The notes below the pieces were generated by a model. The model did no database searches. It had not been told where the DNA came from and saw only the letters and a program-made list of their open reading frames with translations. Shown one piece after another: positions 21,677 through 51,403 of a DNA stretch of 64,000 bases. The stretch is from positions 1 to 64,000 of IMG/VR virus record IMGVR_UViG_3300043409_000928. One strand, 5' to 3'. Numbering within the stretch: position 1 is the stretch's first letter; each line of letters opens with the position of its first letter. Made by a program: the position numbers and the translations under genes.

Positions 21677-21702
21677 CCTCTGTTTGACTTATCGGCAAAA
21701 AT

Positions 21703-22409: not shown

Positions 22410-22471
22410 TTTGGTCTCCGTAAAAAAACAACCATTGCACAATTATACAATGGTTGTTTTAGGTTGTCAAC

Positions 22472-23617: not shown

Positions 23618-23647
23618 ACCAATACTTATCGTCGAAGTTACGAGCAA

Positions 23648-24286
23648 TCAGCAGTAGCCTAGGTGTTCCAATCTAGAGACCAAATTGGTCCAGGCAATTT
23701 GTCGTTTAACTTCTGCTGTGATTTGAATCCTGCTGACAGGGCAGTTGGGACTTTGTGCCCTGTGTGCAATTTCAGTTCTGTTCCAACATGCACCTGGATC
23801 TAGTACCGTAAATGCTGGCGTTGTACCCCAATCATCTATTAGAGATTTAAAACTGTATGCTGTTCGACCCACTCCATTTCGAAGTTCAGTGAACTCACGC
23901 TCGACAATTCGATCACTGTCAATCCCGTCATCCCACCAGTCCAGCGTCACTGGGCTTAGTCCTTGTATTGGAATATTAAAACGAGCCACCATGGCCGTGC
24001 CACGTTCAAATGCATCTATGTGAGCCACCTTGGGACATTGCTTAGGCTGTGAAATAAAACAAGCAAATCTTTTAAATTCTAATTTTAATTCATCAAAATG
24101 TGCCAGTACTGCATCACGCTGTGGCCAAGATTTAAACAATTCTTGTGGTACGTCAACTCGGTCAAATGCCCCTTTGATTAATTTTAATGCTGGATATAGG
24201 TTTGGTGTTAAATTCTCCATGCCCCATGCACAGTCTGAATCAGACGGATTAAATTTAGGCATTGGGATATGATAGTGTTTATGCAT
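23648..24286 (-). CDS. 2OG-Fe(II)-like DSBH protein
   Basis: AHID ... RTEIAH ... R; resembles 14751..15425. Confidence 0.6.
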   Translation of the reverse strand: MHKHYHIPMPKFNPSDSDCAWGMENLTPNLYPALKLIKGAFDRVDVPQELFKSWPQRDAVLAHFDELKLEFKRFACFISQPKQCPKVAHIDAFERGTAMVARFNIPIQGLSPVTLDWWDDGIDSDRIVEREFTELRNGVGRTAYSFKSLIDDWGTTPAFTVLDPGACWNRTEIAHRAQSPNCPVSRIQITAEVKRQIAWTNLVSRLEHLGYC

Positions 24287-24351
24287 TATATTACTTATTG
24301 GGAAAATTCTGGTGTAAAATTCAGATAATTAACTTATACAAGGAGTTTACG

Positions 24352-27383: not shown

Positions 27384-27391
27384 GCACTTAC

Positions 27392-27571
27392 TTACCAACT
27401 GCCGTTGTCAACAACTATCCTGACTGATAGCACGAGTATCTGTACTACAACTTCTCGACGACCGGGGCACGGCCATTCAGCCTTGGTTGGATCAATGCAG
27501 TAAGAAATACGCCAATGAAATGGATTACAAATTAATGTAACCCATATGCCACTGTATCTAAACCAATCCAT
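27392..27571 (-). CDS. Hypothetical protein
   Basis: NPFHWR motif; coupled. Confidence 0.55.
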   Translation of the reverse strand: MDWFRYSGIWVTLICNPFHWRISYCIDPTKAEWPCPGRREVVVQILVLSVRIVVDNGSW

Positions 27572-28089
27572 TAAATATTCCCTTCGTGCTTGGGCATTAT
27601 AAAACCCCACTCATTTGTGGTGCCATGCACATCGTAGGACTTTTCTTCACTGTCATAAGTCCAACCCAGCTCTCGCATCATTTTGTGCTTGACCAATAAG
27701 TTAGGAATACGAAAACGTTCGCAATCTGCAAAGCCCATCATGACACCAACTTCTACTACTGCGCCGCTACGGCAAATGCCTGCATGGCAGTGAACCACAA
27801 CATTCATACGATTTTCCCAAGCATGTTTCAACAAGCGAACCAGCTCAACAGCCTGTGCGTCTGTGATAGCAAACTCACTCATGTCAATAGTCTTACCATC
27901 ACCGGTATTGGTCATGCCATCTTCTTCAATATCCAAAAATGTAAATTGGTGCACTTCTTTGAACTCATGACGGGGTGTAGGAAATGCCATGTCGTGATCC
28001 GAAATTTGAATCAACATGCTGTTGGCACCGCAATCGTGGTGGCGCCCAGCGGCTACATTTTCTAAAGGTATGTTTTCAATCCAGGGCAT
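27571..28089 (-). CDS. Cys-based (tyrosine/dual-specificity-like) phosphatase
   Basis: VHCHAGICRS (CX5R). Confidence 0.85.
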   Translation of the reverse strand: MPWIENIPLENVAAGRHHDCGANSMLIQISDHDMAFPTPRHEFKEVHQFTFLDIEEDGMTNTGDGKTIDMSEFAITDAQAVELVRLLKHAWENRMNVVVHCHAGICRSGAVVEVGVMMGFADCERFRIPNLLVKHKMMRELGWTYDSEEKSYDVHGTTNEWGFIMPKHEGNI

Positions 28090-28099
28090 GTTCTTCTCC

Positions 28100-29581
28100 T
28101 TATAACGACATTAATAGTTGTATGTACTCGGTCAGCCGCTTGTCTTTTGCTGTGACCAGTTCAAAACGAGTCCATTTATTTTTATTTTCTTTTAAAAATC
28201 TATCTTCACTGAATCCAAGTTGAAGTAATTGCAGTATTGACCATGATCCGTGATAGGCATTAGTGGTCAGATTTATCTCCGTTATTGTTTCTTTAAGAAA
28301 TTTGCTAGTTTCTTTAAAACTCCAATAATCGTTATGCCAATTTCCACGATCTTGTTTGATAGGAAAAAAGTAACCGTATTTTTCTTTTTCTTTTTCAAAC
28401 TCACTTGGATTTCGAATCAATGATGTTGTATCGTCGGTAGCCATCATACCCAGGCAATGCCAGGAAATATTGTACAGGTTATTATCATTGAACCAGTGTG
28501 CTGTGCTCTTGATACTTTCTCTAGTGTCACCGGGTAGTCCAATGATAAAACTTAGTGTCTGGTGTATCTTGCCTTTCCAGATATTATGATAAAGTTCTGG
28601 TATATACTCTCGGGCTCGTTTCCCACTCCAACCTTTGCCTATACTGGCCGATGCTTGTTCTCCTAGTGTTTCAATACCATGAAACGTGCTTATCATTCCA
28701 GTTTCTTGCAGTATGTGAGGAACGTCGTCAAATCGCTCCAGTAGGTCGGCTCGTATATAAGATGTAAACTTAATTTTGAATGGTAAACTAGTAATCATGT
28801 CATGCCAAGCTTTCATCTTGTATTCTGTATCGTTGAAAGTGTCGCATATAACGTAGTACAGTTGTGTACCAAAGTTTTCATAGTTACTCAACATCTCTTC
28901 TTTGACCAAGTCAAAGCTTCTAAGGTAGTCTAGCTTTCCTCGACCTAATAATAGGTGATTACAAAATTTACACTTGAAGATACATCCTCGACTTATTTCA
29001 ACTGGTAGTGCTTCGCCTGGTAATATTGCATCTTGTTTGACAAATCTAAAATTGTCAGTTTCAATGTTAAAGTTTTCATGTATTGGTACTGAGTAAACTT
29101 TATATGTTTGACTTGTAATTCTTGTGTTCTCTAATGTATAAGCAGGCTCATCACCGTGTCCTGAGATATGCTTCAGGACATCTACAAATATATCTTCACC
29201 ATATTTTGAAACAACTGAATGAATATTTTGTATTGTTGAGAGTGTCAATCCTGAAAGACCGTAGCCACCAAATATTAATTTTAGATTTGGATATTTTGCT
29301 GTAATGTGATTCAAAGCCAGTGTAAAACTTGCTGTAAATTGCATCTGACCAACGGTAGGTGTAAGGAATGTTGTACTGACACCCAGTACTAATGTGTCAT
29401 TGGAAACAAATTTTTCCAGTGCTGCCACAAGTTGATCATAAGAAAAATAAACCACATGATCAATAACTTGTGCTGTGTATCCGGCTTGCCTTACTGAGTG
29501 AGCAATTTTATATGCGCCCAGAGTACGATACATTGTAATGTTACTAACGTCTGGTCCAGTGTTAAGAATAACAACATCCAT
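28100..29581 (-). CDS. B12-binding radical SAM protein (class B methyltransferase-like)
   Basis: N-terminal B12 domain (GVSTTF, IFGG, GE); SRGCIFKCKFC; GIET; IIGLPGDT. Confidence 0.85.
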   Translation of the reverse strand: MDVVILNTGPDVSNITMYRTLGAYKIAHSVRQAGYTAQVIDHVVYFSYDQLVAALEKFVSNDTLVLGVSTTFLTPTVGQMQFTASFTLALNHITAKYPNLKLIFGGYGLSGLTLSTIQNIHSVVSKYGEDIFVDVLKHISGHGDEPAYTLENTRITSQTYKVYSVPIHENFNIETDNFRFVKQDAILPGEALPVEISRGCIFKCKFCNHLLLGRGKLDYLRSFDLVKEEMLSNYENFGTQLYYVICDTFNDTEYKMKAWHDMITSLPFKIKFTSYIRADLLERFDDVPHILQETGMISTFHGIETLGEQASASIGKGWSGKRAREYIPELYHNIWKGKIHQTLSFIIGLPGDTRESIKSTAHWFNDNNLYNISWHCLGMMATDDTTSLIRNPSEFEKEKEKYGYFFPIKQDRGNWHNDYWSFKETSKFLKETITEINLTTNAYHGSWSILQLLQLGFSEDRFLKENKNKWTRFELVTAKDKRLTEYIQLLMSL

Positions 29582-29627
29582 TTACTTTTATTCCTTGAAA
29601 ATTTAGTGGCTGTGTTACTTATTGTAA

Positions 29628-29655
29628 TGGCTCCAGTGGCTGGGATCGAACTCAG
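29628..29655 (-). pseudogene. tRNA 3'-end remnant
   Basis: CTGAGTTCGATCCCAGCCACTGGAGCCA: T-arm, acceptor strand and CCA only. Confidence 0.65.
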
Positions 29656-29668
29656 GCTGAGAAGTATA

Positions 29669-29744
29669 TGGCTGGCAAACCTGGGCTCGAACCAGGGACA
29701 TTTCGGTTAACAGCCGAACGCTCTACCAACTGAGCTATATGCCA
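29669..29744 (-). tRNA. tRNA-Asn(GTT)
   Basis: CTGTTAA loop; G73. Confidence 0.95.
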
Positions 29745-29760
29745 ATAATAAATTTAATTC

Positions 29761-29890
29761 ACTTTATAGGTGCTCTCTGTGACGCTTGAATTCACGGTAG
29801 CCCTGCTCTTCCTGGCACCTCTTGACCTGCTCGAGACTAGTCAAGTGCAGTGTTGTTCCAGTGTAGCTACTCAGAAAGCACGTATAAAGT
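29761..29890 (-). ncRNA. Stem-closed ncRNA candidate
   Basis: ACTTTATACGTGCTTTCTG...CAGAGAGCACCTATAAAGT. Confidence 0.5.
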
Positions 29891-30088
29891 GTCCGGCTAC
29901 TCACACCACATGAGCCCCGGACTGAGCGGTTACTCTGTCCATAACATTTTTCTTATGGGATGGCGTTATACCACACCCCAGGCAGTTTCCAGTATCCCAT
30001 ATAGTGGGACTGTGAGGTCAGGTCCTAGTGTACCCCCTGTTCTCTCGTTTCAGGGACGCTGTTTTATAACGCAAAACAGTAAACCGGG
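29890..30088 (-). ncRNA. Structured ncRNA candidate, copy A
   Basis: Shares ordered motifs with 32545-32745. Confidence 0.6.
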
Positions 30089-30322
30089 TTATTTAATTTT
30101 ACGCATATAGTTTTTTACATTTATTTCGCCTGAATTAAATTCAAGCAATGCAGTTACCGGTGCGTTAAATTGTTCTGTCTTTCCATCATTCCTATGCTGG
30201 CTTGCTAGTTCTCTTGCTCGAGCAGATGCCATAAGAATCAGATTAAACTTGTTTCCGCCTGCATTTTCAATGCATACCTCCACATCAATTTCTGTGCCGC
30301 GACTTAGTGATTTAGAATGCAT
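30089..30322 (-). CDS. rpoZ: RNA polymerase omega subunit homolog
   Basis: NKFNLILMASARAREL...PVTALLEF..GEI. Confidence 0.8.
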   Translation of the reverse strand: MHSKSLSRGTEIDVEVCIENAGGNKFNLILMASARARELASQHRNDGKTEQFNAPVTALLEFNSGEINVKNYMRKIK

Positions 30323-30348
30323 TGTTTGCCTTTGTTGTTAACTACTCA

Positions 30349-30422
30349 TGGAGCGGGATAAGAGAATCGAACTCTTGACCGAAGATTGGAAATCTGCTGT
30401 TTTACCATTAAACTAATCCCGC
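30349..30422 (-). tRNA. tRNA-Gly(TCC)
   Basis: TTTCCAA loop; U73. Confidence 0.95.
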
Positions 30423-30955
30423 CAATGCACACCACCTACCTGTGTCAAACGTAATGCTATGCTGACTCTGGTATCAGTTACGCCTGATACGTTATGTAGA
30501 ATATTCGAGTGAAGCATCACCCATTTTCTTAACGGCACTATAGTCGAATAACATTTTTCGAGGTCGTCAAACACAGTTGTATTTGCTATGCTAGCTTTTC
30601 TAATTAAAGGAAATCCCTTTTCTATGAACCAATTTGTCTGAACATCTATGCCCCCTTGATCCAGGATATAAAAAATAGTAGTTTCACCTGCCGCGTCTGT
30701 GTGAGGAGCTTTAGTTCCGTATGGGGGGAGAATTTCTTGAATAGAACTGTCACTTAACTGGTAACCATCCAGTTGAGGCACAATATTTGCTGTTATCCAA
30801 TCTTTCATTTTTGTTGACTGCCTGTATTTCATAAAACACTGTTGTCTAGCATAGTATTGAGAAGACAGTGAAATACAGGAATATGCGTCTTGTTCTAGAT
30901 CATATGGTAAGGGTGGATAATCTAATTCTTTATAAAAATCTTCAGGACTAAACAT
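30413..30955 (-). CDS. 2OG-Fe(II)-like DSBH protein
   Basis: PHTD ... ILHNV ... R; stop codon lies inside tRNA-Gly. Confidence 0.6.
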   Translation of the reverse strand: MFSPEDFYKELDYPPLPYDLEQDAYSCISLSSQYYARQQCFMKYRQSTKMKDWITANIVPQLDGYQLSDSSIQEILPPYGTKAPHTDAAGETTIFYILDQGGIDVQTNWFIEKGFPLIRKASIANTTVFDDLEKCYSTIVPLRKWVMLHSNILHNVSGVTDTRVSIALRLTQVGGVHWRD

Positions 30956-30977
30956 TACTTTTTCTCCGTTTTAAACT

Positions 30978-31054
30978 TGGTCGGAGTACTAGGATTCGAA
31001 CCTAGGACCTCATCGTCCCAAACGATGCGAACTACCGGGCTGTTCTACACTCCG
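30978..31054 (-). tRNA. tRNA-Pro(TGG)
   Basis: TTTGGGA loop. Confidence 0.95.
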
Positions 31055-31061
31055 ACATAAC

Positions 31062-31136
31062 TGGTTGCAGGGGATGGATTCGAACCACCGATCTTCAGCT
31101 TATGAGACTGACGAGTTGCCACTTCTCTACCCCGCG
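31062..31136 (-). tRNA. tRNA-Met(CAT), initiator-like
   Basis: C1:A72 mismatch; CTCATAA. Confidence 0.9.
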
Positions 31137-31155
31137 ATAACTTACTAACTTTAAC

Positions 31156-31231
31156 TGGTGCCGCTTGTCGGATTCGAACTGACCACCTGCCGCTTACAAG
31201 GCGGCTGCTCTACCAAATGAGCTAAAGCGGC
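31156..31231 (-). tRNA. tRNA-Thr(TGT)
   Basis: CTTGTAA loop. Confidence 0.95.
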
Positions 31232-31260
31232 GAAACTTTTATAACCTTACTTATGTGTGC

Positions 31261-31335
31261 TGGTGCGCGGTGAGAGTTTCGAACTCCCGACCCTCTCGGT
31301 GTAAACGAGACGCTCTACCACTGAGCTAACCGCGC
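31261..31335 (-). tRNA. tRNA-Val(TAC)
   Basis: TTTACAC loop. Confidence 0.95.
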
Positions 31336-31345
31336 CGTTGATTTA

Positions 31346-31786
31346 TTAATCACCTAGATATTCGTAATTGGTTGACTCAGTGTTTTCTCTAAAAACAATA
31401 GCACCATTTTTTGTATGAAACCTTTTGGCCATCTCTGTTTTAGGACTCAGTGTAACAAATCTTTTAATATGTGTCTTGTGCTGTTGTATATGCTTCACTG
31501 CATCAAATATCAACTGTTTACCAGCGCCTGGCTTGTAACTCCAGATTGTATAAAATACTGCTGTGTCTGGTTCCTCTGAACTTTCAAACAATTGATCTTC
31601 GCTGGTGGGAATTCCAATTTGGTAACTCACACAAGTAATGGCTCGTGCTATATCATTTTCATCTCTTAAAACAAAAATGTCTTTGTTATCGCCCATGCGC
31701 TCTACAGTAGGAATATGCGGGCGTACTGGATCGTCCTTGAGATATTCTGCAAGTTTTTCACTTAGATTTTGAAGAAGGTATAACAT
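31346..31786 (-). CDS. Conserved phage protein, GNAT-like fold
   Basis: DDPVRP, AVFYTIWS..GAG, FVTLSP. Confidence 0.7.
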   Translation of the reverse strand: MLYLLQNLSEKLAEYLKDDPVRPHIPTVERMGDNKDIFVLRDENDIARAITCVSYQIGIPTSEDQLFESSEEPDTAVFYTIWSYKPGAGKQLIFDAVKHIQQHKTHIKRFVTLSPKTEMAKRFHTKNGAIVFRENTESTNYEYLGD

Positions 31787-31961
31787 CAGAGTTACTTAGT
31801 CGTTTATAATTGTTATTGCTATCATCTTTGATAACTGCTTCGGCTTGGTTCTCACCTTCAGCCTTTTTCTTTTTTCCAAACGCCAATTCCCAATTGCTTG
31901 TAAATGTATCTTCATCTACACTCTTTGGTCTTGGCGCGGATCCTTTGCCAGCTTCTTGCAT
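31758..31961 (-). CDS. Small conserved phage protein
   Basis: GKGSAPRP...NWELAFG. Confidence 0.6.
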   Translation of the reverse strand: MQEAGKGSAPRPKSVDEDTFTSNWELAFGKKKKAEGENQAEAVIKDDSNNNYKRLSNSDVIPSSKSK

Positions 31962-31982
31962 ACTAACTTTCCTTTAAAATAG

Positions 31983-32058
31983 TGGTGGAGGTGACAAGGA
32001 TCGAACTTGCGACATCCAGCTTGCAAAGCTGGCGCTCTCCCAACTGAGCTACACCCCC
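31983..32058 (-). tRNA. tRNA-Ala(TGC)
   Basis: G3-U70; TTTGCAA. Confidence 0.95.
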
Positions 32059-32076
32059 AAAAATTTTATGATTTGC

Positions 32077-32164
32077 ACCATAGAAAAACACACTCAAGTC
32101 CGCGGCACGGAAGGCACTATACCCGCGATGGCTTTTGACCAGGCCTAGTGTGTTTATCTATAGT
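32077..32164 (-). ncRNA. Stem-closed ncRNA candidate
   Basis: ACTATAGATAAACACACT...AGTGTGTTTTTCTATGGT, near-identical stem to 19656-19788. Confidence 0.55.
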
Positions 32165-32165
32165 T

Positions 32166-32273
32166 AGCATATTGAAACACACTATACAACAGGTTTAGGT
32201 CTGCTTCTGTATCCTGCTACGGCCGAGTATGAAGTTATCTCTGGACCTATGCCGTAATGTGTTTTAATATGCT
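32166..32273 (-). ncRNA. Stem-closed ncRNA candidate
   Basis: AGCATATTAAAACACATT...AGTGTGTTTCAATATGCT. Confidence 0.55.
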
Positions 32274-32460
32274 CTGCGAACCCCGGTGGTAATTGTAGTG
32301 CATCCTCTCCCGGGTTACCCCAGTACGACCTCACCTTCCACCCACTTCCCGGCAGGTTCCGTTAACGCATTGCCAGCGGCCTTTTGGTTCGAAGACTACC
32401 ACCCGTGGTTGTCACACCACTTCTCATCCTGCGGGTCACAGTATCCGACGACACTCGGAA
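32272..32460 (-). ncRNA. GC-rich structured ncRNA candidate
   Basis: CTGTGACCC/GGGTTCGCAG and GGTGGTAGT/ATTACCACC long-range stems. Confidence 0.5.
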
Positions 32461-32464
32461 CGTC

Positions 32465-32540
32465 TGGTTGCGGGGCTTGGATTTGAACCAAGGATGGCAA
32501 TGGCTTATGAGACCACGCTGGTGACCAGGCCCTCCCCGCG
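32465..32540 (-). tRNA. tRNA-Met(CAT), initiator-like, aberrant D arm
   Basis: C1:A72; CTCATAA; CCA. Confidence 0.8.
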
Positions 32541-32544
32541 ATTA

Positions 32545-32745
32545 GGATTAAGCTACTGGTTTCCACACCAGCCCTTAAATTGAGCAGTTACTCTGTCCAT
32601 CTCATTTATTCAAAGTCTGTGTGCAGTTGAGATTCTGCCTATCAGAGTCTGCGAGGGTAGTTTCCAGCCTCACGCTTACGGTTTTCTGCCACCGGATCTC
32701 TATCGCTAATCAAACGCTATTTTAACGAAAATAGTAACGGGATAG
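32545..32745 (-). ncRNA. Structured ncRNA candidate, copy B
   Basis: Shares ordered motifs with 29890-30088. Confidence 0.6.
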
Positions 32746-32870
32746 ATGGGCTCAGTTACAAACTGATTTAATGCTCCCTGCTCGGCGTTTTGACTTGCAT
32801 CCTTTTCAGGCTGACCTTCAAGGTCCATTTAATGCGTCCTGCTTTGCGTTCTGGAACCACCCTAAACTCT

Positions 32871-32899
32871 ATTATAGCACCAATCAACGTGAGTGTCAA
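32871..32899 (-). promoter_or_regulatory. sigma70 promoter (internal)
   Basis: TTGACA-17-TATAAT. Confidence 0.8.
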
Positions 32900-32913
32900 T
32901 TGGTGCCAAATCT

Positions 32914-32988
32914 TGGCGACTCGTGGGAGAATCGAACTCCCGTAAGCGGATAGACAATCCGCAGTAATAACCTCTATACGAACGAGCC
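32914..32988 (-). tRNA. tRNA-Asp(GTC)
   Basis: TTGTCTA loop; G73. Confidence 0.92.
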
Positions 32989-32995
32989 TAATTTC

Positions 32996-33080
32996 TGGTG
33001 CGACTGGCCGGAATCGAACCGGCACGCCCTTCAGCGAGAGATTTTAAGTCTCTTGTGTCTACCGATTTCACCACAGTCGC
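32996..33080 (-). tRNA. tRNA-Leu(TAA)
   Basis: CTTAAAA loop; long variable arm. Confidence 0.95.
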
Positions 33081-33083
33081 AAT

Positions 33084-33300
33084 ACCATATGTAAAATTAC
33101 AAAGGAACTCCACTTACCTTGCAGGACCGTCTCCTGCTACTTCTGCTTCGTCATTACGCTCTAGTAAATCCTACCGTGCCATTTGGTGATGTTGCCATCC
33201 CTCAGCTTTCATATACACTACATTGAGCCAGCCCGTCAGCTGGTTATACTCAATACAGGTACCTAGCAGTACTAGTAACCTTTATAACTTTACATATGGT
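33084..33300 (-). ncRNA. Stem-closed ncRNA candidate (~215 nt)
   Basis: ACCATATGTAAAGTTATAAAGG...CCTTTGTAATTTTACATATGGT. Confidence 0.55.
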
Positions 33301-33371
33301 ACTCGATAGGAGAATCGAACTCCTCTTTCCGGCGTGAAAGGCCAGCGTCCTAACCGATAGACGAATCGAGC
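33297..33371 (-). tRNA. tRNA-Glu(TTC)
   Basis: CTTTCAC loop. Confidence 0.95.
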
Positions 33372-33386
33372 ACAAATGCCACCAAA

Positions 33387-33399
33387 TTTTTAAAGAACA
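33387..33399 (-). promoter_or_regulatory. boxA-like antitermination element
   Basis: TGTTCTTTAAAAA vs rrn boxA TGCTCTTTAACA. Confidence 0.6.
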
Positions 33400-33430
33400 A
33401 TCACTTCAACTTTCGCTGTAGTGTTTGGTT

Positions 33431-33566
33431 ATTATATACGGACAATGCCGTAATGTCAACCGTTTTCTAACTTTCTTTTGTTGTATTTCTACAACAACTT
33501 TCAAACTGTTTCTACTGTATTGCTACAGTATGCCACTAGTATATGCTATCTACTGATTCCTGTCAA
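33431..33566 (-). promoter_or_regulatory. Tandem sigma70 promoters, each with an upstream palindrome
   Basis: TTGACA-17-TATAAT (33431-33459); TTGACA-17-TATACT (33538-33566); TGTTGTATTTCTACAACA at 33479 and 33586. Confidence 0.8.
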
Positions 33567-33607
33567 CAACTATCTGCCTTTATTTTGTTGTATTTCTACA
33601 ACAAACT

Positions 33608-33681
33608 TGGAGCGGGATAGGAGAATCGAACTCCTGACTAAACCTTGGCAAGGTTTCGTTTGACCATTAAACTAATCCCGC
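33608..33681 (-). tRNA. tRNA-Gly(GCC)
   Basis: TTGCCAA loop; U73. Confidence 0.95.
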
Positions 33682-42297: not shown

Positions 42298-42455
42298 TCT
42301 TGCTTTCTTAGTCGATCAATTTCATCTGCGGCTTCTTCCAGCAGGTCGGCAATTCGATCCGGGGCTCCTTCTTGTACACTCTTTCGAGTCTGAATTTGCC
42401 TCCGGATCTCTGCTCTTTTTCTTAAACGAAACACAAGGTCTTGTTCGCTGATCAT
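42294..42455 (-). CDS. Small conserved phage protein
   Basis: RLRKRAEIRRQI...DRIADLLEEAADEI. Confidence 0.65.
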   Translation of the reverse strand: MISEQDLVFRLRKRAEIRRQIQTRKSVQEGAPDRIADLLEEAADEIDRLRKQE

Positions 42456-42955
42456 TTAGACACACTGGTCCTGGCTTCTGCCATTAACGTGGCATCTCCA
42501 CGAGTCAACACTTCCAACAACAACCGCTTTTCTTCCAAGTACACTTTGGCAAAGGCAACATCTTCTTTTACAATGCTTCTGGTGTTGGAGATCAAGTCGG
42601 CCAACTTTACAGTCTGTGCTCCGGCAGGTGCACCGGCAGTATGTGCCCGGTCAATTGCCTTGCGAATAGCACGATTGCCTTGTTCGGGACGACTGACATC
42701 AGTTAACCAGCCCACTAACTCAGCAACCGCGGCGCCAAATTCGGCACGGATCACTTCGTTGGTAACGCCAGTGTCTTCAACAACATCATGCAACCAAGCG
42801 GCCGCCAACATTTCGGGTGTGTGGGAAACTGTTGAAACAATGCTGGCTACTTCAGCAGGATGCACAATGTACGGCTCATTAGTGTACTTCCGTAATTGTG
42901 CCACAGCTGAATGGGCCGCTGTTGCAAAAATTCTGGCTCGTTCTACTAATTCCAT
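42452..42955 (-). CDS. HD-domain hydrolase, SpoT/Mesh1 small alarmone hydrolase-like
   Basis: AH..Q.RK..EPYIVHP, LHDVVEDT, VKLADLISN. Confidence 0.85.
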   Translation of the reverse strand: MELVERARIFATAAHSAVAQLRKYTNEPYIVHPAEVASIVSTVSHTPEMLAAAWLHDVVEDTGVTNEVIRAEFGAAVAELVGWLTDVSRPEQGNRAIRKAIDRAHTAGAPAGAQTVKLADLISNTRSIVKEDVAFAKVYLEEKRLLLEVLTRGDATLMAEARTSVSK

Positions 42956-43029
42956 ATGATTCTCCTGTTTCATATAGTATTATAGCACAAATTGGGCAGT
43001 GAAGTCAACCGTTGTGAAAATACAACAAG

Positions 43030-43375
43030 AAGAAACCCGCCGAAGCGGGTTCTGAGTTTCTGTTACGAGGTATGTCTTACCCTAAGTGGCTGTTAGGCCG
43101 CTAATGCGAACTGTGAGTCGTTTGCTTTTACTTTATTTCTTCTTTTTACATCGTTGCTGATGTGCTGTCCACTTGTTTACTTGTTGCCCTGTCGAAACCA
43201 TGACTGGCCCATCAAAAAAGGACTATAAAGAATACTACTATCAGTACGATAGATAGAACTCCACATACGAGTTGATACAGATATTCACTATCCATACAAT
43301 CCCCTTTTGGTGGACCAGGCGGGAGTCGAACCCGCGTCCAGAACACTTTTCTCTTTGCTTCATACAGCAATAACT
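43030..43375 (-). ncRNA. ssrA: Circularly permuted two-piece tmRNA
   Basis: T-arm/CCA piece (ends 43308) precedes GGGCCAG piece (starts 43210); G3-U70; tag ANDSQFALAA at 43093-43125; promoter TTGACC-17-TATACT at 43379-43407; terminator at 43030-43051. Confidence 0.92.
43212..43295 (-). CDS. 27-aa hydrophobic peptide inside tmRNA intervening segment
   Basis: MDSEYLYQLVCGVLSIVLIVVFFIVLF; AAGGGG RBS. Confidence 0.5.
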   Translation of the reverse strand: MDSEYLYQLVCGVLSIVLIVVFFIVLF

Positions 43376-43403
43376 TACAGTATATACTTATTTGATCAGC
43401 AGG

Positions 43404-45146
43404 TCAAATCAATTTAAATAGGCCAAACGCACTGCCATTTTCGTTGCTGTATGCCAGATAGTTGACATTAGAATTTCCTGGAATAGAACTTGAACCAAAC
43501 CAGTATGATGCTCGTTCTTGTTCTGTAACAACTGCCCATGTACCGTCACCATCAATTACTTCGCCATCGCTGTCTCTATTCAGTACCCACTTTTGTGTAA
43601 TTGTAGATTCTGAGTTATACCACCATACTGATTCTGTTGGTACTAGTGGCTCAACAGTTCCTGAATAAATTCTATTCTCTGCGGCAAAGTATATGTTGGT
43701 TCCAAACTCATTTGTAATTCTTCTTTGGTAGCCTTCGTCTCCTGGAATACCGTTTGCATCTTCTAATAATTCTGCTGTTTCGAGTCTGCTCAATCCTTGA
43801 TTGAATTTTACTACCTTGCCATCTCCTCCAATCATTGGTTTCAAATCTGTTCCTACTTTACAAATATAAAATTCTGGAGCAACTGATGCTGGGACTAAAT
43901 TATTGGTTGTATCAAACGAAAATCCATTTAGTTCAGCACTTGGAATTGACAGTATATGATTGTATCCTCTATGCAATGTAATTTCAGGATTCCTGTTTAG
44001 GTAAACATCTTTACGACCATTGACCACTTGTTCACTTTGTACTCCTGTCACAGCCCAACAGTTTCTATCTGCAATCCATACAAAGTTAAAATTTGTCACT
44101 GGAGGATCAATGATTGCTTCGGCTGTGGCATCACCACCATCTTGTTCGTTACCAGAAATTGTGTTTGCGTTATATCCTATGAACTTTCCGCAATAGTCGT
44201 ACAATGGTTCTAGTTGAGCAAAGAATGGATCTTGTGGAGTCAGTGCCGCAATGGCCAAGGCATAAACATCTGGGCCAACAATGCTTGGCCAAATATTATT
44301 ATTTCTTATACCGTTAATATCTGCAGGATAGTTTGCTGTTTTTCCTAGGTTAGATACGATCGACTGTGCTTGTGCTGTTGCATCTTTTAAGTTGGGACTA
44401 TCAATAGGCGGGTATGGAGGATTCCATTTAACAGCGGGCGCAGATGCTATTGTTACTGGCTGTACGTCGGTGGTCTTATACGGCTTGCCAGTTTTTAAAT
44501 TTGTTTTGTGTCTAAAGTCAGGAAACAACTGTCTGTTGATTGATTTGTCAAGTGCTTTCTTAACTCCTTGTAATCTTTTAGTTAACTGGTCAATTTTTTG
44601 ACCTGGAATATTGGCCATCTTCCCGCCGTGCTTTTGAATACTACCAAGTATACTGCTTGGATTGTAAGAACCTGTATTAAGGCCGCCGTCGCCGTTTAAG
44701 CACAATTGTGGTTTTGTCAATCGACCAATGTCATTTAAGATTGCATTCATTTCAGCAAACTCGGCATCAATGATCTGGCTCAACACATCAGGGATTTTTG
44801 GCGCCTTGAGAGGAATTTTACATAGCCCATCTAACGCCAATAAACTTTGCACTTCTGCAATTGCACTGTTTACTCTGCCTAGTATTTCTTTTGCGCCAGA
44901 TAGATCTTCTAGTGCCTTTAACTGATCTTTGATGCCGCGCAGTTCATTTTGTAAATCTTTGATCGTAGGCAAGTCAGTATTTTCAGAAATTAATGCATCA
45001 AGGTCAAGCTTTATACATAACAAAGGACCTTTGAGCATGTTACTAAGACCACCAAACAGTATGGCACATATGATGTCCTTGATTGGTTTGTTCAAGATGC
45101 CTTTGGTCGCAACCTTAACGCCTGGGATAATTGGGATGTCTGCCAT
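43404..45146 (-). CDS. Putative virion structural (baseplate/tail-region) protein
   Basis: Late promoter TAAGTA; context. Confidence 0.6.
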   Translation of the reverse strand: MADIPIIPGVKVATKGILNKPIKDIICAILFGGLSNMLKGPLLCIKLDLDALISENTDLPTIKDLQNELRGIKDQLKALEDLSGAKEILGRVNSAIAEVQSLLALDGLCKIPLKAPKIPDVLSQIIDAEFAEMNAILNDIGRLTKPQLCLNGDGGLNTGSYNPSSILGSIQKHGGKMANIPGQKIDQLTKRLQGVKKALDKSINRQLFPDFRHKTNLKTGKPYKTTDVQPVTIASAPAVKWNPPYPPIDSPNLKDATAQAQSIVSNLGKTANYPADINGIRNNNIWPSIVGPDVYALAIAALTPQDPFFAQLEPLYDYCGKFIGYNANTISGNEQDGGDATAEAIIDPPVTNFNFVWIADRNCWAVTGVQSEQVVNGRKDVYLNRNPEITLHRGYNHILSIPSAELNGFSFDTTNNLVPASVAPEFYICKVGTDLKPMIGGDGKVVKFNQGLSRLETAELLEDANGIPGDEGYQRRITNEFGTNIYFAAENRIYSGTVEPLVPTESVWWYNSESTITQKWVLNRDSDGEVIDGDGTWAVVTEQERASYWFGSSSIPGNSNVNYLAYSNENGSAFGLFKLI

Positions 45147-45882: not shown

Positions 45883-46446
45883 CTAACCTTCCTCTCCTGG
45901 CGCTGGCACATAAGCAGGCGGCGGCACGCTCTCTTGCCAGTCAGGCGGATCATATTCAATTACAGCGTCTGGACTTCCTAAATTGGTCCCTTTCATTTTA
46001 ACTGCGCCAAGATCATACTCAACATAGCTAAACAAGTGACTACAATATTGTCTAGCACCAATCAGTGATTCATCTGTTAAAAGCCCTTCGGCCAGCACAC
46101 TTCCGCGGGCCCGTGCTATGGCAGTTCCTTTCGCATGACCAATTAACAATGGACCCGATGCATATCCAGAAAAGTTGACGCCGCCAAATGTAAGATTATA
46201 TCCATACTCCATAAAAGTTGTTTCAAGAAACGCTTTAACATTTTCTGGTAAACTTGCTCCAACTTTCTCTGATCTGAAATCCATCAAATATTGATGAGCT
46301 TCGACTCTGTTTAATGCAATTCTAGGATACGCTTGCATAAATTTATCTTGGGCCGCTCTACGGTTTTTACTAACTTCTAATACATAGTCCACAAAGCCGG
46401 ACTCATATTCTTGCACTAGTTCACTGCCAGTTACTGGTTCAGCCAT
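45883..46446 (-). CDS. Hypothetical protein
   Basis: ORF track. Confidence 0.65.
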   Translation of the reverse strand: MAEPVTGSELVQEYESGFVDYVLEVSKNRRAAQDKFMQAYPRIALNRVEAHQYLMDFRSEKVGASLPENVKAFLETTFMEYGYNLTFGGVNFSGYASGPLLIGHAKGTAIARARGSVLAEGLLTDESLIGARQYCSHLFSYVEYDLGAVKMKGTNLGSPDAVIEYDPPDWQESVPPPAYVPAPGEEG

Positions 46447-47405
46447 GCGTCATCTCCTCCAAAAGGTAATAATTTTTCTTTGGGCAACTTACCATCTTTG
46501 GTCATTACTTCCATAATTTTTTGTGTATACCATGCTTCTCCGGTTGCTATTGCCTTAGCACTTAGTAAGTTGTCACCTGCTACTTGATTTACAACAATGT
46601 TACTTATCGGTGTAGATGCATTGTTTAACGATAAATCGTTGTTGAATGGCAATATTTCTTCTTTAATCGCAGGTACCACATCTATAATTTTTTGCCTATA
46701 CCATGCGTCAACTGCGGCTATAACACCATTGGATAATCCAGGATTAGCATTGCCAATTGAGGATGAGGCAAACATACTAGCAGATGCAACCACTGGAGGC
46801 ACACTACCTCCACTGAACGGTAAGCCTTGTGGGGGTGCTGCCGGTATGACACCAGAATTTATTACAGTCTGTATTATTTTATCCTCAAAGGCCGCTGTAG
46901 CACTTGCTTTTGCAGTTAGAGTTATACGCTTTAAACCTTCTGGTGTGTCAAATGGTAATCCTGCCGCCGGTGCCGCTTGAAAGGATTTCTCCAATACGGC
47001 ACTGATCACTGCCGCATTTACTGCCGCGATGGCCGCATTGGAAATATTAGGAGGTCCTATCGCCGGCGATGCTGGAGGTGTACTACTTCCGTCTGCATTA
47101 CTAGAACTAGATGTAGGTGTTTGGTTACCTGTGCCATTGGCTCCATCTACATATACATCTGGACTGCCATCTTCTCTAGTATGCCCGCATTCGTCTTCAT
47201 CACCTTGACGATTTACAGGTATCCCATTGATAAAAACTGTAGGACTACCGTTTGTAGTATATGACTCTATGTGTAAATCGTGTGATTCTACAAAACTTCC
47301 ATCAATTGCAATCAATAGGCCGTTGGCATAAACAGTACCCTGGGCAATATCTCGTATTTCCCCATCGCCATCATTTATGTCGCCTAATCGTTGAACGGCT
47401 GGCAT
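46431..47405 (-). CDS. PAAR spike-tip protein (gp5.4-like) with C-terminal extension
   Basis: PAVQRLGD, GSPTVFINGIPVNRQGD..CGH. Confidence 0.8.
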   Translation of the reverse strand: MPAVQRLGDINDGDGEIRDIAQGTVYANGLLIAIDGSFVESHDLHIESYTTNGSPTVFINGIPVNRQGDEDECGHTREDGSPDVYVDGANGTGNQTPTSSSSNADGSSTPPASPAIGPPNISNAAIAAVNAAVISAVLEKSFQAAPAAGLPFDTPEGLKRITLTAKASATAAFEDKIIQTVINSGVIPAAPPQGLPFSGGSVPPVVASASMFASSSIGNANPGLSNGVIAAVDAWYRQKIIDVVPAIKEEILPFNNDLSLNNASTPISNIVVNQVAGDNLLSAKAIATGEAWYTQKIMEVMTKDGKLPKEKLLPFGGDDAWLNQ

Positions 47406-47406
47406 T

Positions 47407-47724
47407 TTAGTTGAAAACCATACCCTTTGGGGCAACTTGGATGCCGCTTAACGCTGAAGTGTATTGATCAGCAAGTTCTTTATCTGTATTTGCTACGCAC
47501 ACTACCAGTGCCTTATTGATCGACAAATCTCGAGTACTGCCAGGGGCAACTGTCATAAGGTATGGTGTTAGTGCTGGGCCACCTTTAGGGCCAACGCTGA
47601 GTGTGACTGGACGATCGATGACATAAAAGCCACTGTCTTCACTGGTGTAACATCCAATGAGTTCTTCTCCTGAACTCATTTTTAGTGTCACTACATCTCC
47701 GGCTTTTCTAATATTAAGTAACAT
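47407..47724 (-). CDS. Conserved phage protein (Sm-like beta fold suspected)
   Basis: GDVVTLKMSSGEELIG. Confidence 0.7.
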   Translation of the reverse strand: MLLNIRKAGDVVTLKMSSGEELIGCYTSEDSGFYVIDRPVTLSVGPKGGPALTPYLMTVAPGSTRDLSINKALVVCVANTDKELADQYTSALSGIQVAPKGMVFN

Positions 47725-47960: not shown

Positions 47961-49061
47961 TCAGAGTTTAAATCCAGCGAAGGTACTTTTGCTAACATCT
48001 TGCTTAATTCCTCCAATGACATAACTTTCAATTTCGGTTTCTTGGGGGGCCACTTGAAGTCCCTTGCTACTTGTCCAATGCTCTGTCCAAGGTAACGGAT
48101 TATCGTTAGCACTTCGGTCATATCGTTGTTCAACTCCTAGCCCTTTAAGACGGCGATTACCAATGTATTCAACATACTGATGTAATAGACGTTCATTTAA
48201 ACCAACAATAGCACCTCGGCTAAACAAATGGTCTGCCCAATCTTTTTCTTCAGCAACAACTTGGTCATAAATTTCACCAATGGCTGAATAATTCTCTTGT
48301 GCAATTTCCTGCATTTCAGGGTCATCCCCTCTTTGCCAATTCTTAATGATGTGACTGGTAATGCTTAGATGTTGGCTTTCGTCTCGAGCAATCAAACTAA
48401 TAATTTTAGCAGAGCCTTCCATTTTTTTTAGTTCGCCAAAAGCAAAGCTACATGCAAAGCTGACAAAAAACCTAAGTGCTTCAAGTGCGTTTACATTTAC
48501 CATGGCCAAGAACAGCTTCTTTTTGACATCTCGCATTGTACCTTTGCCTGCTACTGTAAATTGCTGTGCCGCGGCAATGAATTCATCGTATGATTTGGTC
48601 ACTGATTTAGCCCTGGCAATAATCTTCTCATCATCCAGCATGGTATCAAATACTTCGCTTGGATCACTGTAAACATTTTTAATAATATGTGTGTATGACC
48701 TGCTGTGAATGTTTTCAAAGAATTGCCATGCGTTCATGCATCCTTCAAGTTCGGGCAACGAACAATATGGCATGAATGCCATTGCTGGCGCACGACCTTG
48801 TACGCTGTCAAGCAGTATTTGATACTTTAAGTTGGCAGTGAAAATAAACTTCTGTTCATCACGGAAGTCCATGTAGTCACTACGATCTTTTTGCAAACTT
48901 ACTTCTTCAGGTCTCCAGAAATATCCAAGCTGTGTTTGTGTAAGTTTATCAAACACCGGATACTTGAATACATCAAACCGTTGGGCATTTAGAGCCTCAC
49001 CAAAAAACATAGGCTGTTTGGTAAAGTCTACTTTATTCTGATTAAAAACTGTCGCTGACAT
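47961..49061 (-). CDS. nrdB: Ribonucleotide reductase class Ia beta subunit
   Basis: FWRPEEV, ENIHSRSY, DESQH, VAPQETEI. Confidence 0.97.
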   Translation of the reverse strand: MSATVFNQNKVDFTKQPMFFGEALNAQRFDVFKYPVFDKLTQTQLGYFWRPEEVSLQKDRSDYMDFRDEQKFIFTANLKYQILLDSVQGRAPAMAFMPYCSLPELEGCMNAWQFFENIHSRSYTHIIKNVYSDPSEVFDTMLDDEKIIARAKSVTKSYDEFIAAAQQFTVAGKGTMRDVKKKLFLAMVNVNALEALRFFVSFACSFAFGELKKMEGSAKIISLIARDESQHLSITSHIIKNWQRGDDPEMQEIAQENYSAIGEIYDQVVAEEKDWADHLFSRGAIVGLNERLLHQYVEYIGNRRLKGLGVEQRYDRSANDNPLPWTEHWTSSKGLQVAPQETEIESYVIGGIKQDVSKSTFAGFKL

Positions 49062-49069
49062 TCAAATCC

Positions 49070-51403
49070 TTAAATTGTGCAAGCTTCGCAAGCTTCGTCA
49101 CTATCGGGTATTAATAGTGTCGGTTGTAAATTATGATGGGTGTCTGACACAGATTGTATGTTATCTTCATCTTCACCTTTCATATCGTATGTATTCTGGT
49201 AGTAACTGGTTTTCCAACCCAATTTATATGTGGTCAACAGATCTGTGAACATCACACTCATTGGCACTTCGTTGTCTGGATAATGTTTTGGATTGTAACT
49301 CCAATTTCCACTAATGGCTTGATCAAAGTATTTTTGCATTGCGGCCACAATACGAATGTAACCATCGTTAACGCCTTCTTCATACAGGTAAGAGTACTCA
49401 TTTTTCAATGAATTATATTGAGGAACAATTTGTTTCAACGGACCTTTCTTACTCTTCTTTGTACTCATTGCGGCTCGCGGTGGCTCAATACCATTTGTTT
49501 CATTGCTGGCCACACTACTAGATTCACTGGGCATTTGTGCGCTCAGTGTGCTGTGACGCATGCCATGCTCTGCAACTTCTCTGCGTAGGGCTTCCCAATC
49601 GTAATGTAATTCAGTGCCGAGAAACTCGTCAACTTCACGCTTGTATGTGTCAACTGGTAAAATGCCTTGGCTGTATTTTGTACGATCAAAGAATTCACAT
49701 GGACCTTTTTCCTTGGCCAACTGCACACTGGCCTTGATCAAATAATACTGGAATGCTTCTGTTAAACGATTGACTGACCTGGCGGCTTCTGGATCGCTGT
49801 ACTTTAAACCTTTCTTGGCCAGGTAATGTGCCATACCAATGTAACCAATTCCAAGACTGCGACGAGCCTTGGTACTGCGCTCTGCGGCCGCAACTGGGTA
49901 ACGCTGATAGTCAATGATCTGATCCAGAGCACGAACCGCCAGTTCTGTTAGATTTTTAAGATCATCTAACTCTCTTAGATTGCCAACATTGATTGCACTA
50001 AGAATACAAAGGGCAATTTCTCCTTCGACATCATCCATGGATTGAATTGGATCTGTTGGCAATGTAATTTCTTGACACAGGTTACTCATGCGAATCATAT
50101 CTTGAAAGCTACTGTGACTGTTACAGTGGTCAATGTTCATGATATAGATGCGGCCGGTTTCGGCTCTCTCTTTCAGCATCTGCCCAAACAATGCCATTGC
50201 CTTCACAGTCTTCTTTGGAATCTTAGAATTGTTTTCGTATTTTACATACAGCGCATCAAAGGTATCGTTGTTACCAAATGCTTCGTACAGGCCAGGAACA
50301 TCATGTGGTGAGAACAGTGTGATGTCACCATCAACAATCAGTCTCTCATAGAACAGTTTGCTCAACTGGATTGAATAGTCCAACTTACGAACACGATTGT
50401 CTTCTGTTCCTTTGTTGTTCTTCAACACCAGTATGTCTTCAATTTCTTTGTGCCAAATTGGGAAATGCACAGTGGCACTTCCGCCACGCACACCATTTTG
50501 TGTACAGCTACGCACCACTGACTCAAATACTTTTAAGAAGGGAACAACTCCAGTGTGTGCCACTTCACCGCCTCGGATCTTTGAATTAATAGCACGAATG
50601 CGACCAAGATTTAGACCAATGCCAGCTCGTTGTGCAATGTAATAACCAACGGCGGTAGAACTATTAAAGATTGAAGGTAATGTGTCATCAACATCAACCA
50701 GCACACAACTGGCAAATTGTCGAATAGGGGTACGCACTCCGCTCATTACAGGAGTAGGAATATTAATTTTAAATGTAGAAATTGCGTCATAGTAACGACG
50801 AATGTAACTCAGACGCTTGTCAGCTGGATAGGTAGCAAACAATGTTGCCGCAATCATCATGTACATGTACTGTGGCGTTTCAAACACCCGACCATTGCTA
50901 CGATCTTGAACAAGATACTTGTCAACCACTTGGCGCATACCAGCGTAAGTGAAATCTAAATCACGCTGGTGGCTAATGTACACATCCAACTGGCGCCATT
51001 CTGGTTCGGTATATTGAGTCAACAATTCGGCATCATATACTCCTCGATCAACATTCTTTTTAACTAGATCATATAAAGGAATGTAATCAAATTGTCCAAA
51101 TACATCTTTGCGTAATCCGTATAGCAGTAAACGGGACGCGGCATATTGATAGTTTGGTTTTTCTAGGCTAACTAAATCGCTAGCACTACGCACTAGAATT
51201 TCTTGTATATCTGCGGTAGTGATGCCATCATTGAATTGCAAATCTGCATTCATTTCAATTTGACTTACGCTGACTCCTGCTAACCCTTCACAAGCCTCTT
51301 CTACCATTAAATGGATTTTGTTTATGTCCAACGGCTCTCGGTGCCCATCTCTCTTTACAACATTTATTATACTTTTGCTCATATCTCTTATTTGATTATC
51401 CAT
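49070..51403 (-). CDS. nrdA: Ribonucleotide reductase class Ia alpha subunit
   Basis: ATP cone VVKRDG, FASC, SNLCQEI, C-terminal CEAC. Confidence 0.97.
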   Translation of the reverse strand: MDNQIRDMSKSIINVVKRDGHREPLDINKIHLMVEEACEGLAGVSVSQIEMNADLQFNDGITTADIQEILVRSASDLVSLEKPNYQYAASRLLLYGLRKDVFGQFDYIPLYDLVKKNVDRGVYDAELLTQYTEPEWRQLDVYISHQRDLDFTYAGMRQVVDKYLVQDRSNGRVFETPQYMYMMIAATLFATYPADKRLSYIRRYYDAISTFKINIPTPVMSGVRTPIRQFASCVLVDVDDTLPSIFNSSTAVGYYIAQRAGIGLNLGRIRAINSKIRGGEVAHTGVVPFLKVFESVVRSCTQNGVRGGSATVHFPIWHKEIEDILVLKNNKGTEDNRVRKLDYSIQLSKLFYERLIVDGDITLFSPHDVPGLYEAFGNNDTFDALYVKYENNSKIPKKTVKAMALFGQMLKERAETGRIYIMNIDHCNSHSSFQDMIRMSNLCQEITLPTDPIQSMDDVEGEIALCILSAINVGNLRELDDLKNLTELAVRALDQIIDYQRYPVAAAERSTKARRSLGIGYIGMAHYLAKKGLKYSDPEAARSVNRLTEAFQYYLIKASVQLAKEKGPCEFFDRTKYSQGILPVDTYKREVDEFLGTELHYDWEALRREVAEHGMRHSTLSAQMPSESSSVASNETNGIEPPRAAMSTKKSKKGPLKQIVPQYNSLKNEYSYLYEEGVNDGYIRIVAAMQKYFDQAISGNWSYNPKHYPDNEVPMSVMFTDLLTTYKLGWKTSYYQNTYDMKGEDEDNIQSVSDTHHNLQPTLLIPDSDEACEACTI

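Follow-up and report, generated by a model that had tools for sequence, protein, structure and literature searches.

Does the segment that separates the two pieces of a phage transfer-messenger RNA (tmRNA), and that is absent from the mature molecule, encode a protein of its own? We examined this question at a locus within a 64,000-nucleotide (nt) stretch of viral DNA (positions 1 to 64,000 of IMG/VR record IMGVR_UViG_3300043409_000928; hereafter, the window), where a permuted, two-piece tmRNA gene on the minus strand encloses a 97-nt intervening sequence, or spacer, that holds a Shine-Dalgarno (SD) motif and a 27-codon open reading frame (ORF). The explanation that we favor, at a probability of about 0.6, is that this intervening sequence of a jumbo phage tmRNA is a genuine gene for a 27-residue membrane peptide, and that the spacer position is an exchangeable cargo site for small ORFs whose translation likely occurs co-transcriptionally.

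Two-piece tmRNAs are established in alpha-, beta- and cyanobacteria (PMC11915505) and are already known from aquatic phages (PMC9004378). The tmRNA database paper covers only 79 phage tmRNAs, and the unusual intervening-sequence contents that it reports are a tRNA-Ala gene and a repeat element only (PMC11915505). A full-text literature search, which had the founding two-piece tmRNA papers outside its scope, returned no description of ORFs in tmRNA intervening sequences. What is new here is a protein gene nested in such a sequence, and the swappable small-gene slot in which it sits is a broader and more interesting result than the single ORF.

Both the initial annotation of the locus, which had been made from the letters alone, and the present analysis arrived at a permuted tmRNA. 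ARAGORN called it at 43002-43400 on the minus strand with the tag ANDSQFALAA, and two Rfam models aligned over their full length, beta_tmRNA RF01850 with 132.2 bits (cut-off 84) and tmRNA_permuted RF04321 with 119.6 bits (cut-off 47). Upon reading the minus strand, we also found all elements that had been described for the spacer, namely its 97 nt, the AAGGGG ribosome-binding site and the 27-codon ORF. The gene shares with betaproteobacterial two-piece tmRNAs (RF01850/RF04321) the order of acceptor piece, intervening sequence and coding piece, as well as the T-arm, the P2 pairing, an ALAA-type tag and the alanine identity pair G3.U70, which is formed here by GGGCCAG and CTGGTCC. One promoter and one terminator flank both the tmRNA and the micro-ORF, and the coverage by RNA contigs ends at ~43372-43378, the start site expected from that promoter. 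Only about one in four relatives had a match to a simple regular expression for the -35 and -10 elements ahead of the acceptor piece, and we make no claim that the promoter type is conserved among them. A SmpB gene was absent from the 285-kb record (86% complete), and the phage tmRNA would presumably depend on the SmpB of its host.

The micro-ORF encodes the peptide MDSEYLYQLVCGVLSIVLIVVFFIVLF, which has a mean hydropathy of 2.1 and consists of an acidic head of ~8 residues followed by 19 hydrophobic residues that run to the C-terminus, with no basic residues and no charged or polar tail. Its stop codon sits 1 nt before G1, the first base of the coding piece. Scanning viral contigs with the acceptor-piece sequence, we obtained at least 119 loci, in 107 of which the downstream 5' piece could be placed, with spacers of 51-279 nt; ARAGORN, used as an independent check, reported a permuted tmRNA at 114 of 116 testable loci. 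At least 8 of the loci carried an SD, an ATG and a peptide of 23-24 amino acids (aa) clearly related to that of the window, in which an acidic beginning (for example MND(E/D) or MDNEY) leads into a hydrophobic helix where a Gly and a Phe are conserved, and VLL or VLF comes directly before the stop. A second scan, anchored on the junction of the anti-SD and the 5' piece, yielded ~19 further homologues, and a third, context-blind scan with the back-translated C-terminal motif yielded 9 more members, all of them in tmRNA slots and some with different T-arms. In total, ~36 other viral contigs (27 by the nucleotide scans and 9 by the motif scan) carry a homologue of the micropeptide in the same tmRNA slot, and the context-blind scan found no free-standing copy outside such slots, its remaining matches being unrelated ORFs.

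The substitution pattern among these homologues points to selection on the peptide. In the close pair L013 and L082, 14 synonymous differences accompanied 4 non-synonymous ones. We then considered nine phylogenetically independent pairs and restricted the count to interior codons, so that the stem-constrained ends were excluded; in the real frame, this gave 35 synonymous (Sd) and 32 non-synonymous (Nd) differences, a ratio of the non-synonymous to the synonymous proportion (pN/pS) of 0.31 and a synonymous excess with p = 2e-6, compared to pN/pS values of 0.92 and 1.61 in the shifted control frames, neither of which was significant. The fraction of T was 0.66 at codon position 2 versus 0.18 at position 1 and 0.31 at position 3, indicating that the hydrophobicity does not stem from general T-richness. 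In the alignment, M1, F22 and L26 were invariant and G12 and V25 were at least 90% conserved, and G12, F22 and the hydrophobic pattern were retained between subfamilies even though synonymous sites were nearly saturated there (pS 0.4-0.8). The consensus fold revealed no conserved RNA secondary structure in the ORF interior. Together, the purifying selection on interior codons, the frame-specific enrichment of T at codon position 2 and the lack of interior RNA structure indicate a protein-coding ORF, and comparative criteria thus strongly support its being a gene. The comparison with spacers of related phage tmRNAs that the initial annotation had proposed therefore came out in favor of a genuine, conserved gene for a single-helix hydrophobic peptide and against chance T-richness.

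Beyond the micropeptide family, ORFs turned out to be common in these spacers. Among the matches listed, 107 unique spacers were distinguished, of which 21 carried the micropeptide, 21 another ORF (defined as starting within ~20 nt of the CCA and covering most of the spacer) and 65 no ORF, so that 42 of 107 (39%) were ORF-bearing. An SD-like motif was found in the first 12 nt of 33 of the 42 ORF-bearing spacers compared to 3 of the 65 ORF-less ones (Fisher p = 5e-16). ORFs spanning a spacer from its beginning as far as the terminal stop occurred in 22 of 95 unique spacers, as opposed to 5.6 ± 2.2 after shuffling (maximum 13 in 1000 shuffles), and an ORF covered at least 70% of the spacer in 25 cases in the frame of the terminal stop, while the other two frames gave 4 and 0 such cases and the reverse strand gave 1. 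The other cargos are diverse: some, at 44-80 aa, look like soluble proteins, and L054 and L074 carry two homologous ones, of 83 and 84 aa, that have a hydrophobic stretch at either end. A 44-aa Cys-rich cargo matched phrog_13558 (E = 1e-12) and one cargo resembled DUF6552 (E = 1e-4, below the cut-off), whereas domain and PHROGs searches found no family for most of the longer cargo ORFs.

These data bear directly on the view that the ORF is no gene at all but a by-product of an AT-rich, structured spacer, with its conservation reflecting RNA structure or recent common descent. The ORF is indeed short, the stem constrains its first and last codons, shuffled spacers still produce the 5.6 slot-filling ORFs in 95 mentioned above, and its coding support is comparative. 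Yet the selection signal is frame-specific and resides in interior codons that lie outside conserved secondary structure, the hydrophobic pattern outlasts near-saturation of synonymous sites, SD motifs go together with ORFs, and the family occurs in tmRNAs with many different tags and with divergent flanks. We therefore consider this view very improbable.

The distribution of the cargo suggests that it is exchanged. On a tree of mature tmRNA sequences, the micropeptide was scattered, and at least 6 changes were required even when only well-supported branches were counted. L012, without an ORF, and L082, with the micropeptide, have identical mature tmRNA parts, and the sister of the window copy, L026 (92% identity, support 100/90), has a 66-nt spacer without an ORF. 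The pairs L012/L082, window/L026 and L135/L117 each combine the same or nearly the same mature tmRNA with wholly different spacers that do or do not contain the micropeptide gene. The flanking genomes in such spacer-swapped pairs were 77-80% identical or unalignable, and the tmRNA seems to be more conserved than the phages that carry it. Micropeptide cassettes were found with 17 different tag sequences. We suggest that phages exchange spacer cassettes by way of the conserved tmRNA parts, which would serve as homology arms.

A long spacer appears to be a phage trait. Bacterial contigs that share the acceptor piece (L145-L202: Accumulibacter, Rhodocyclaceae, Sulfuritalea, Sterolibacterium) place G1 just 3-4 nt after CCA, the gap usually reading CTGC, CTGG or similar, whereas phage spacers measure 51-279 nt, are closed by a stem and contain an ORF in 39% of the unique cases, indicating that the long, stem-closed spacer is an expansion seen in phages. 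We found no close relatives of the locus among cultured phages, with matches confined to the T-arm region. Four of the Xanthomonas and Stenotrophomonas phages that matched there, BUDD, JGB6, QDWS359 and Bhz51, have permuted tmRNAs with essentially ORF-less spacers. In JGB6 (L122, OQ436456.1), an 86-nt spacer after the CCA at locus position 1265 contains a 27-codon ORF, MGLGISAARWFLAILSNQPVYMTARSS, whose ATG lies 1 nt after the CCA, which has no SD and which ends at the terminal TGA; it could be a chance or leaderless-type ORF and was left out of the ORF counts. We further noted that several micropeptide-carrying tmRNAs (L125, L129, L131, L132, L134, L136, L140 and others) have unusually long tags, such as ANADTFDFSAMSFTGNTVSGKSKVALAA; these comprise 26-31 residues, compared to 10-13 in the usual case. 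In L021, L080 and L090 (117-nt spacers), as well as L063, L108, L034 and L052, a good SD and ATG are followed by an ORF in a frame other than that of the terminal TGA, which extends 31-90 nt into the tmRNA coding piece. Cleavage at G1 would leave such a message without a stop codon, and its product would itself become a target of tmRNA tagging.

We found that the ends of the spacer are tied to each other and to the tmRNA. A 13-bp stem that includes 4 G.U pairs joins the first 13 nt to the 13 nt immediately upstream of the terminal UGAU (minimum free energy -24.6 kcal/mol, z = -2.15), in line with the pairing over the ribosome-binding site that had been proposed at the outset. Across the relatives, which contain 68 distinct 5' 10-mers, spacer ends paired with their own partners at -9.7 kcal/mol compared to -3.7 kcal/mol with mismatched partners, indicating that the ends are specifically complementary. 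In folds of the whole precursor, A73-U, C75-G and A76-U connect the closing stem to the acceptor stem, on which it stacks, giving one long helix. Of 95 unique spacers, 76 had TGA and 17 had TAA as the terminal stop, and 93 had T as the last base, regardless of whether an ORF was present. Covariation links the first base of the spacer with the last sense base (U-A in 19 and A-U in 2 sequences), which makes the C-terminal residue Leu (UUA) or Phe (UUU); the window copy has Phe. Over the SD, the pairs in the consensus fold are G.U, G.U, a mismatch or G-C, and then G-C. The tmRNA precursor thus supplies or shares the stop codon, the last three codons (GUC CUU UUA/U, the anti-SD) and the SD (the purine-rich 5' strand). 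As ORF-less spacers also possess the stem and the UGAU, the stem is a general property of phage tmRNA precursors, within which the ORF has had to find its place, rather than a feature of the ORF. It is even stronger in the 65 ORF-less spacers, at -10.8 kcal/mol versus -8.6 and -7.3 kcal/mol in the ORF-bearing ones (p = 0.0017). Of the initial proposal that the stem occludes the ribosome-binding site, the location of the SD inside a stable stem stood, while the notion of a device dedicated to the ORF did not.

To describe when a ribosome could load, we computed the free energy needed to open the 15-nt window from SD to start codon, taking the nascent RNA as the state in which the 3' stem strand is not yet made. 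For the window copy, opening cost 7.0 kcal/mol in the nascent RNA, 9.3 kcal/mol in the excised spacer and 13.4 kcal/mol in the precursor, and the corresponding means for the micropeptide family were 4.1, 8.1 and 11.3 kcal/mol. The SD remains occluded upon excision because the spacer ends stay paired with each other, and although 3' trimming of the excised spacer would lay the SD open, the stop and the last codons would be lost with it. With the nascent RNA being most accessible and excision providing only partial relief, translation would most likely be co-transcriptional, confined to a roughly one-shot window, rather than gated by processing. The idea that expression of the peptide is gated by tmRNA processing, as initially put forward, hence found no support in the computed energies.

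The same energies weigh on the possibility that the peptide is a type I-like membrane toxin whose mRNA is kept silent by the stem over the SD until processing of the tmRNA frees the spacer. The small, hydrophobic, single-helix peptide has the size of IbsC, ShoB or DinQ, the SD is occluded in the folded precursor by a stem rich in G.U over the SD, and excision does lower the opening energy by ~3-4 kcal/mol. The excised SD nevertheless stays closed, trimming that would free it costs the end of the ORF, and the same stem is found, in stronger form, where there is no ORF to silence. Searching 10 family members against Pfam at E <= 10, we obtained only weak, unrelated matches, all at E >= 0.06 and none to a toxin family; PHROGs contained no family match for the micropeptide; and the neighborhood annotation revealed no lysis or toxin-antitoxin genes linked to the tmRNA locus. 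An antisense RNA was unsupported, with one opposite-strand promoter-like site among the 4 found versus 1.9 expected; as an antitoxin promoter, this site at 43272-43300 was rejected, being oriented away from the ORF and no more than chance would yield. Unrelated soluble proteins occupy the same slot, and in the RNA data described below, the spacer interior of a second family member had zero depth in four runs, with no stable excised mRNA seen. We regard this toxin model as unlikely. The likeness to type I toxins that had been noted earlier holds for size and hydrophobicity only, while the family searches and the non-hydrophobic proteins in the same slot speak against it. A toxin-like, membrane-damaging activity of the micropeptide, be it processing-gated or not, is a real possibility with the odds against it; we rather expect a small inner-membrane peptide that is made in low amounts along with the phage tmRNA and targets either a host membrane protein or the membrane as such.

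Metatranscriptomes from lakes showed that the precursor is transcribed. In four of them, contigs ran unbroken from the coding piece (43183-43188) over G1, the whole spacer and the CCA up to 43340-43372, with depths of 3.8-27.6 and, for one contig, without a mismatch. Neighboring protein genes had zero depth in two of the four runs, which argues against carry-over of DNA. For L131, the second family member, we mapped at 97% stringency in four runs from four studies and found both tmRNA pieces covered, whereas none of the four gave any depth in the spacer interior; one contig has its start at G1+1, and in one run, a contig from the acceptor piece continues into a different spacer with SD and ATG. 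This pattern fits removal and turnover of the spacer as well as natural cassette diversity. RNA contigs also left the tmRNA pieces of the window copy for other spacers at 43219/43308 in X16, and loose ends were seen at 43219 in X15 and at L131:3687 in X27. Contigs with other spacers, one of which has its own SD and ATG, indicate that several spacer variants co-occur in the same lakes.

Combining these observations, we suggest the following course of events. The tmRNA promoter would drive a single transcript, and a ribosome would load on the SD only before the 3' stem strand, ~80 nt downstream, is transcribed, or during rare breathing of the G.U-rich stem. With only 1 nt between the stop codon and G1, the acceptor 5' strand would be covered by any ribosome that terminates there, and translation and folding of the tRNA-like part would then be mutually exclusive on any one molecule. 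Once the long helix has formed, the precursor would be closed to translation. Precursors of two-piece tmRNAs are processed by tRNA-end enzymes, and the closed precursor would be cut at G1 by RNase P and after the CCA, giving the two tmRNA pieces while the spacer is turned over. The outcome would be a small dose of membrane peptide that is tied to tmRNA transcription, with the peptide expected to insert in the host inner membrane and to act on a host membrane protein or on membrane integrity.

The position of the stop codon also raises the possibility of a cis-acting leader ORF, in which translation itself matters: a ribosome at the UGA next to G1 would unfold the closing and acceptor stems and tune the maturation of the precursor, thereby coupling tmRNA supply to ribosome availability. 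The coverage of the acceptor strand by a terminating ribosome would favor this, as does the fact that very different slot ORFs share the position of the SD and often the same stop. Purifying selection on the amino acids and the frame-specific hydrophobicity argue that the product itself is selected, though. Furthermore, 65 of 107 spacers have no ORF and yet their tmRNAs look intact, so maturation needs no translation, and several cargo ORFs stop 9-13 nt or more before G1. A leader function thus appears improbable. Another option goes further than the co-transcriptional cargo gene that we favor: the slot may be a dedicated, recombination-exchangeable expression site with nascent-only translation that delivers its cargo in a small, fixed ratio to the tmRNA, with the micropeptide being no passenger but working together with the phage tmRNA, for example on membrane machinery that handles tagged or stalled products. 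We hold this for a long shot.

Several points weigh against a translated membrane-peptide gene in the window. Its micropeptide is the most divergent member of the family, with 21-57% identity to the others and 3 extra residues, and the selection signal of this copy itself consists of one strain variant and its family membership. That variant, the common one in the RNA data, combines GTA>GTG at codon 20, which is synonymous, with CTT>TTT (Leu26Phe), which turns a G-C pair of the stem into G.U and keeps the pairing. The restriction of the family to tmRNA slots may in part be an artefact of a search motif that was shaped by the stem. At -11.6 kcal/mol, the closing stem of the window copy is as strong as those of ORF-less spacers and its translation may be very inefficient; nor is its nascent opening cost of 7.0 kcal/mol low. 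The mature tmRNA pieces reached depths of hundreds to thousands at 90% stringency, a count that includes related tmRNAs, and the RNA evidence consists of assembled contigs that carry neither strand nor read ends and do not by themselves prove the processing sites. Support for translation is evolutionary in kind, and the timing, the processing enzymes and the target of the peptide are what we infer.

Parallels exist in several known systems. Dual-function RNA genes include S. aureus RNAIII/delta-hemolysin, E. coli SgrS/SgrT and B. subtilis SR1/SR1P. Here, too, a functional RNA and a small peptide (whose translation is predicted) would arise from one transcript, and delta-hemolysin is likewise a membrane-active peptide, of 26 aa; by contrast, the present ORF is located outside the functional RNA, in a part that maturation removes, and the host RNA is a tmRNA rather than a base-pairing regulator. 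Homing-endonuclease ORFs of group I introns, including those in the T-loops of tmRNAs, are similarly protein genes in a tolerated loop that is removed at maturation, and their content is variable and swapped between otherwise similar host genes. The tmRNA slot differs from them in that removal occurs by end-processing of two pieces and not by splicing, that the cargo of 23-84 aa has no endonuclease or maturase domain in Pfam or PHROGs, and that there is no sign of the cargo promoting its own mobility. With type I toxins (Hok, TisB, IbsC, ShoB, DinQ, Fst), the micropeptide shares the format of a hydrophobic single helix of 20-50 aa, and the sequestration of the SD by long-range pairing in the full-length RNA is reminiscent of the 5'-3' pairing in hok mRNA. 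Differences are that no antisense antitoxin and no family match were seen, that a charged or polar tail is missing, and that the sequestering stem belongs to the tmRNA precursor and is present without the ORF. Coordinates of all elements are collected in Table 1.

Table 1. Elements of the two-piece tmRNA gene and of its nested micro-ORF, in positions of the window.
Feature	Position	Strand	Description	Basis
Sigma-70-like promoter of the tmRNA gene	43379..43407	-	TTGACC 43407-43402, 17-nt gap, TATACT 43384-43379; 10/12 consensus matches	
tmRNA acceptor piece	43308..43369	-	P2 5' strand, T-arm, acceptor 3' strand CTGGTCC, discriminator A, CCA 43310-43308	Rfam alignments, ARAGORN, sequence
Intervening sequence (spacer)	43211..43307	-	97 nt between CCA and G1	Sequence
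Closing stem, 5' strand	43295..43307	-	AAAGGGGATTGTA	Folds and consensus fold
Shine-Dalgarno motif	43301..43306	-	AAGGGG, 5 nt upstream of the ATG, within the 5' strand of the closing stem	Sequence
Micro-ORF, 27 codons	43212..43295	-	ATG 43295 to TGA 43214-43212; acidic N-terminus MDSEY, 19-residue hydrophobic C-terminal helix	Coding: homologues, pN/pS
Closing stem, 3' strand (anti-SD)	43215..43227	-	TATAGTCCTTTTT; also codes for the last residues I-V-L-F	Folds and consensus fold
Terminal UGAU	43211..43214	-	Stop codon of the ORF; pairs with A73/C75/A76 of the ACCA tail	Precursor folds
tmRNA coding piece	43031..43210	-	G1 43210, acceptor 5' strand GGGCCAG 43210-43204, P2 3' strand, tag frame, 3' hairpins	Rfam model to 331/331, ARAGORN
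Tag reading frame	43093..43125	-	Resume codon GCA 43125-43123, TAA 43095-43093; encodes ANDSQFALAA	ARAGORN, sequence
Intrinsic terminator hairpin and T-rich tail	43033..43052	-	8 bp, 5 of them G-C; also the last helix of the Rfam model	

The window represents the first 64 kb of the 285-kb IMG/VR record, whose completeness is estimated at 86%, and the DNA and RNA runs in which it was found are lake and freshwater metagenomes. Among its genes are those for a class Ia ribonucleotide reductase, an HD phosphohydrolase and a phosphoesterase. A near-consensus sigma-70 promoter at 42979-43008 on the minus strand (TTGACT, 18 nt, TG-TATAAT; 11/12) immediately follows the tmRNA terminator and precedes the HD phosphohydrolase gene (42452-42973). 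On the other side, a 580-aa ORF without a PHROG match (43404-45146, minus strand) has its end at 43404 within the -35 region of the tmRNA promoter; further upstream of it follow a PAAR-like protein (46431-47435) and nrdA/nrdB (47961-51403). A tRNA array at 16821-33681 on the minus strand comprises 29 genes according to ARAGORN, which cover most amino acids and include 4 tRNA-Met(cat) and 2 tRNA-Trp; a weak thirtieth tRNA-like Rfam match at 21177-21258 (33.6 bits) was not called by ARAGORN.

Overall, the intervening sequence of two-piece tmRNAs, so far treated as discarded filler, is a gene slot in many aquatic phages, including jumbo phages of 280-350 kb, and its ORFs have been missed by annotation pipelines because they are only 23-84 aa long and lie inside an RNA gene. 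In this slot, constraints on protein and RNA fall on the same bases: the SD is one strand of the stem, the last three codons are the other, the stop is the partner of the CCA tail, and the C-terminal Leu or Phe follows a covariation in the stem. The locus offers a natural system for studying translation that is limited to a co-transcriptional window, as well as a family of phage membrane micropeptides for functional tests. More generally, it indicates that conserved RNA genes can serve as homology arms for swapping small cargo between divergent phages.

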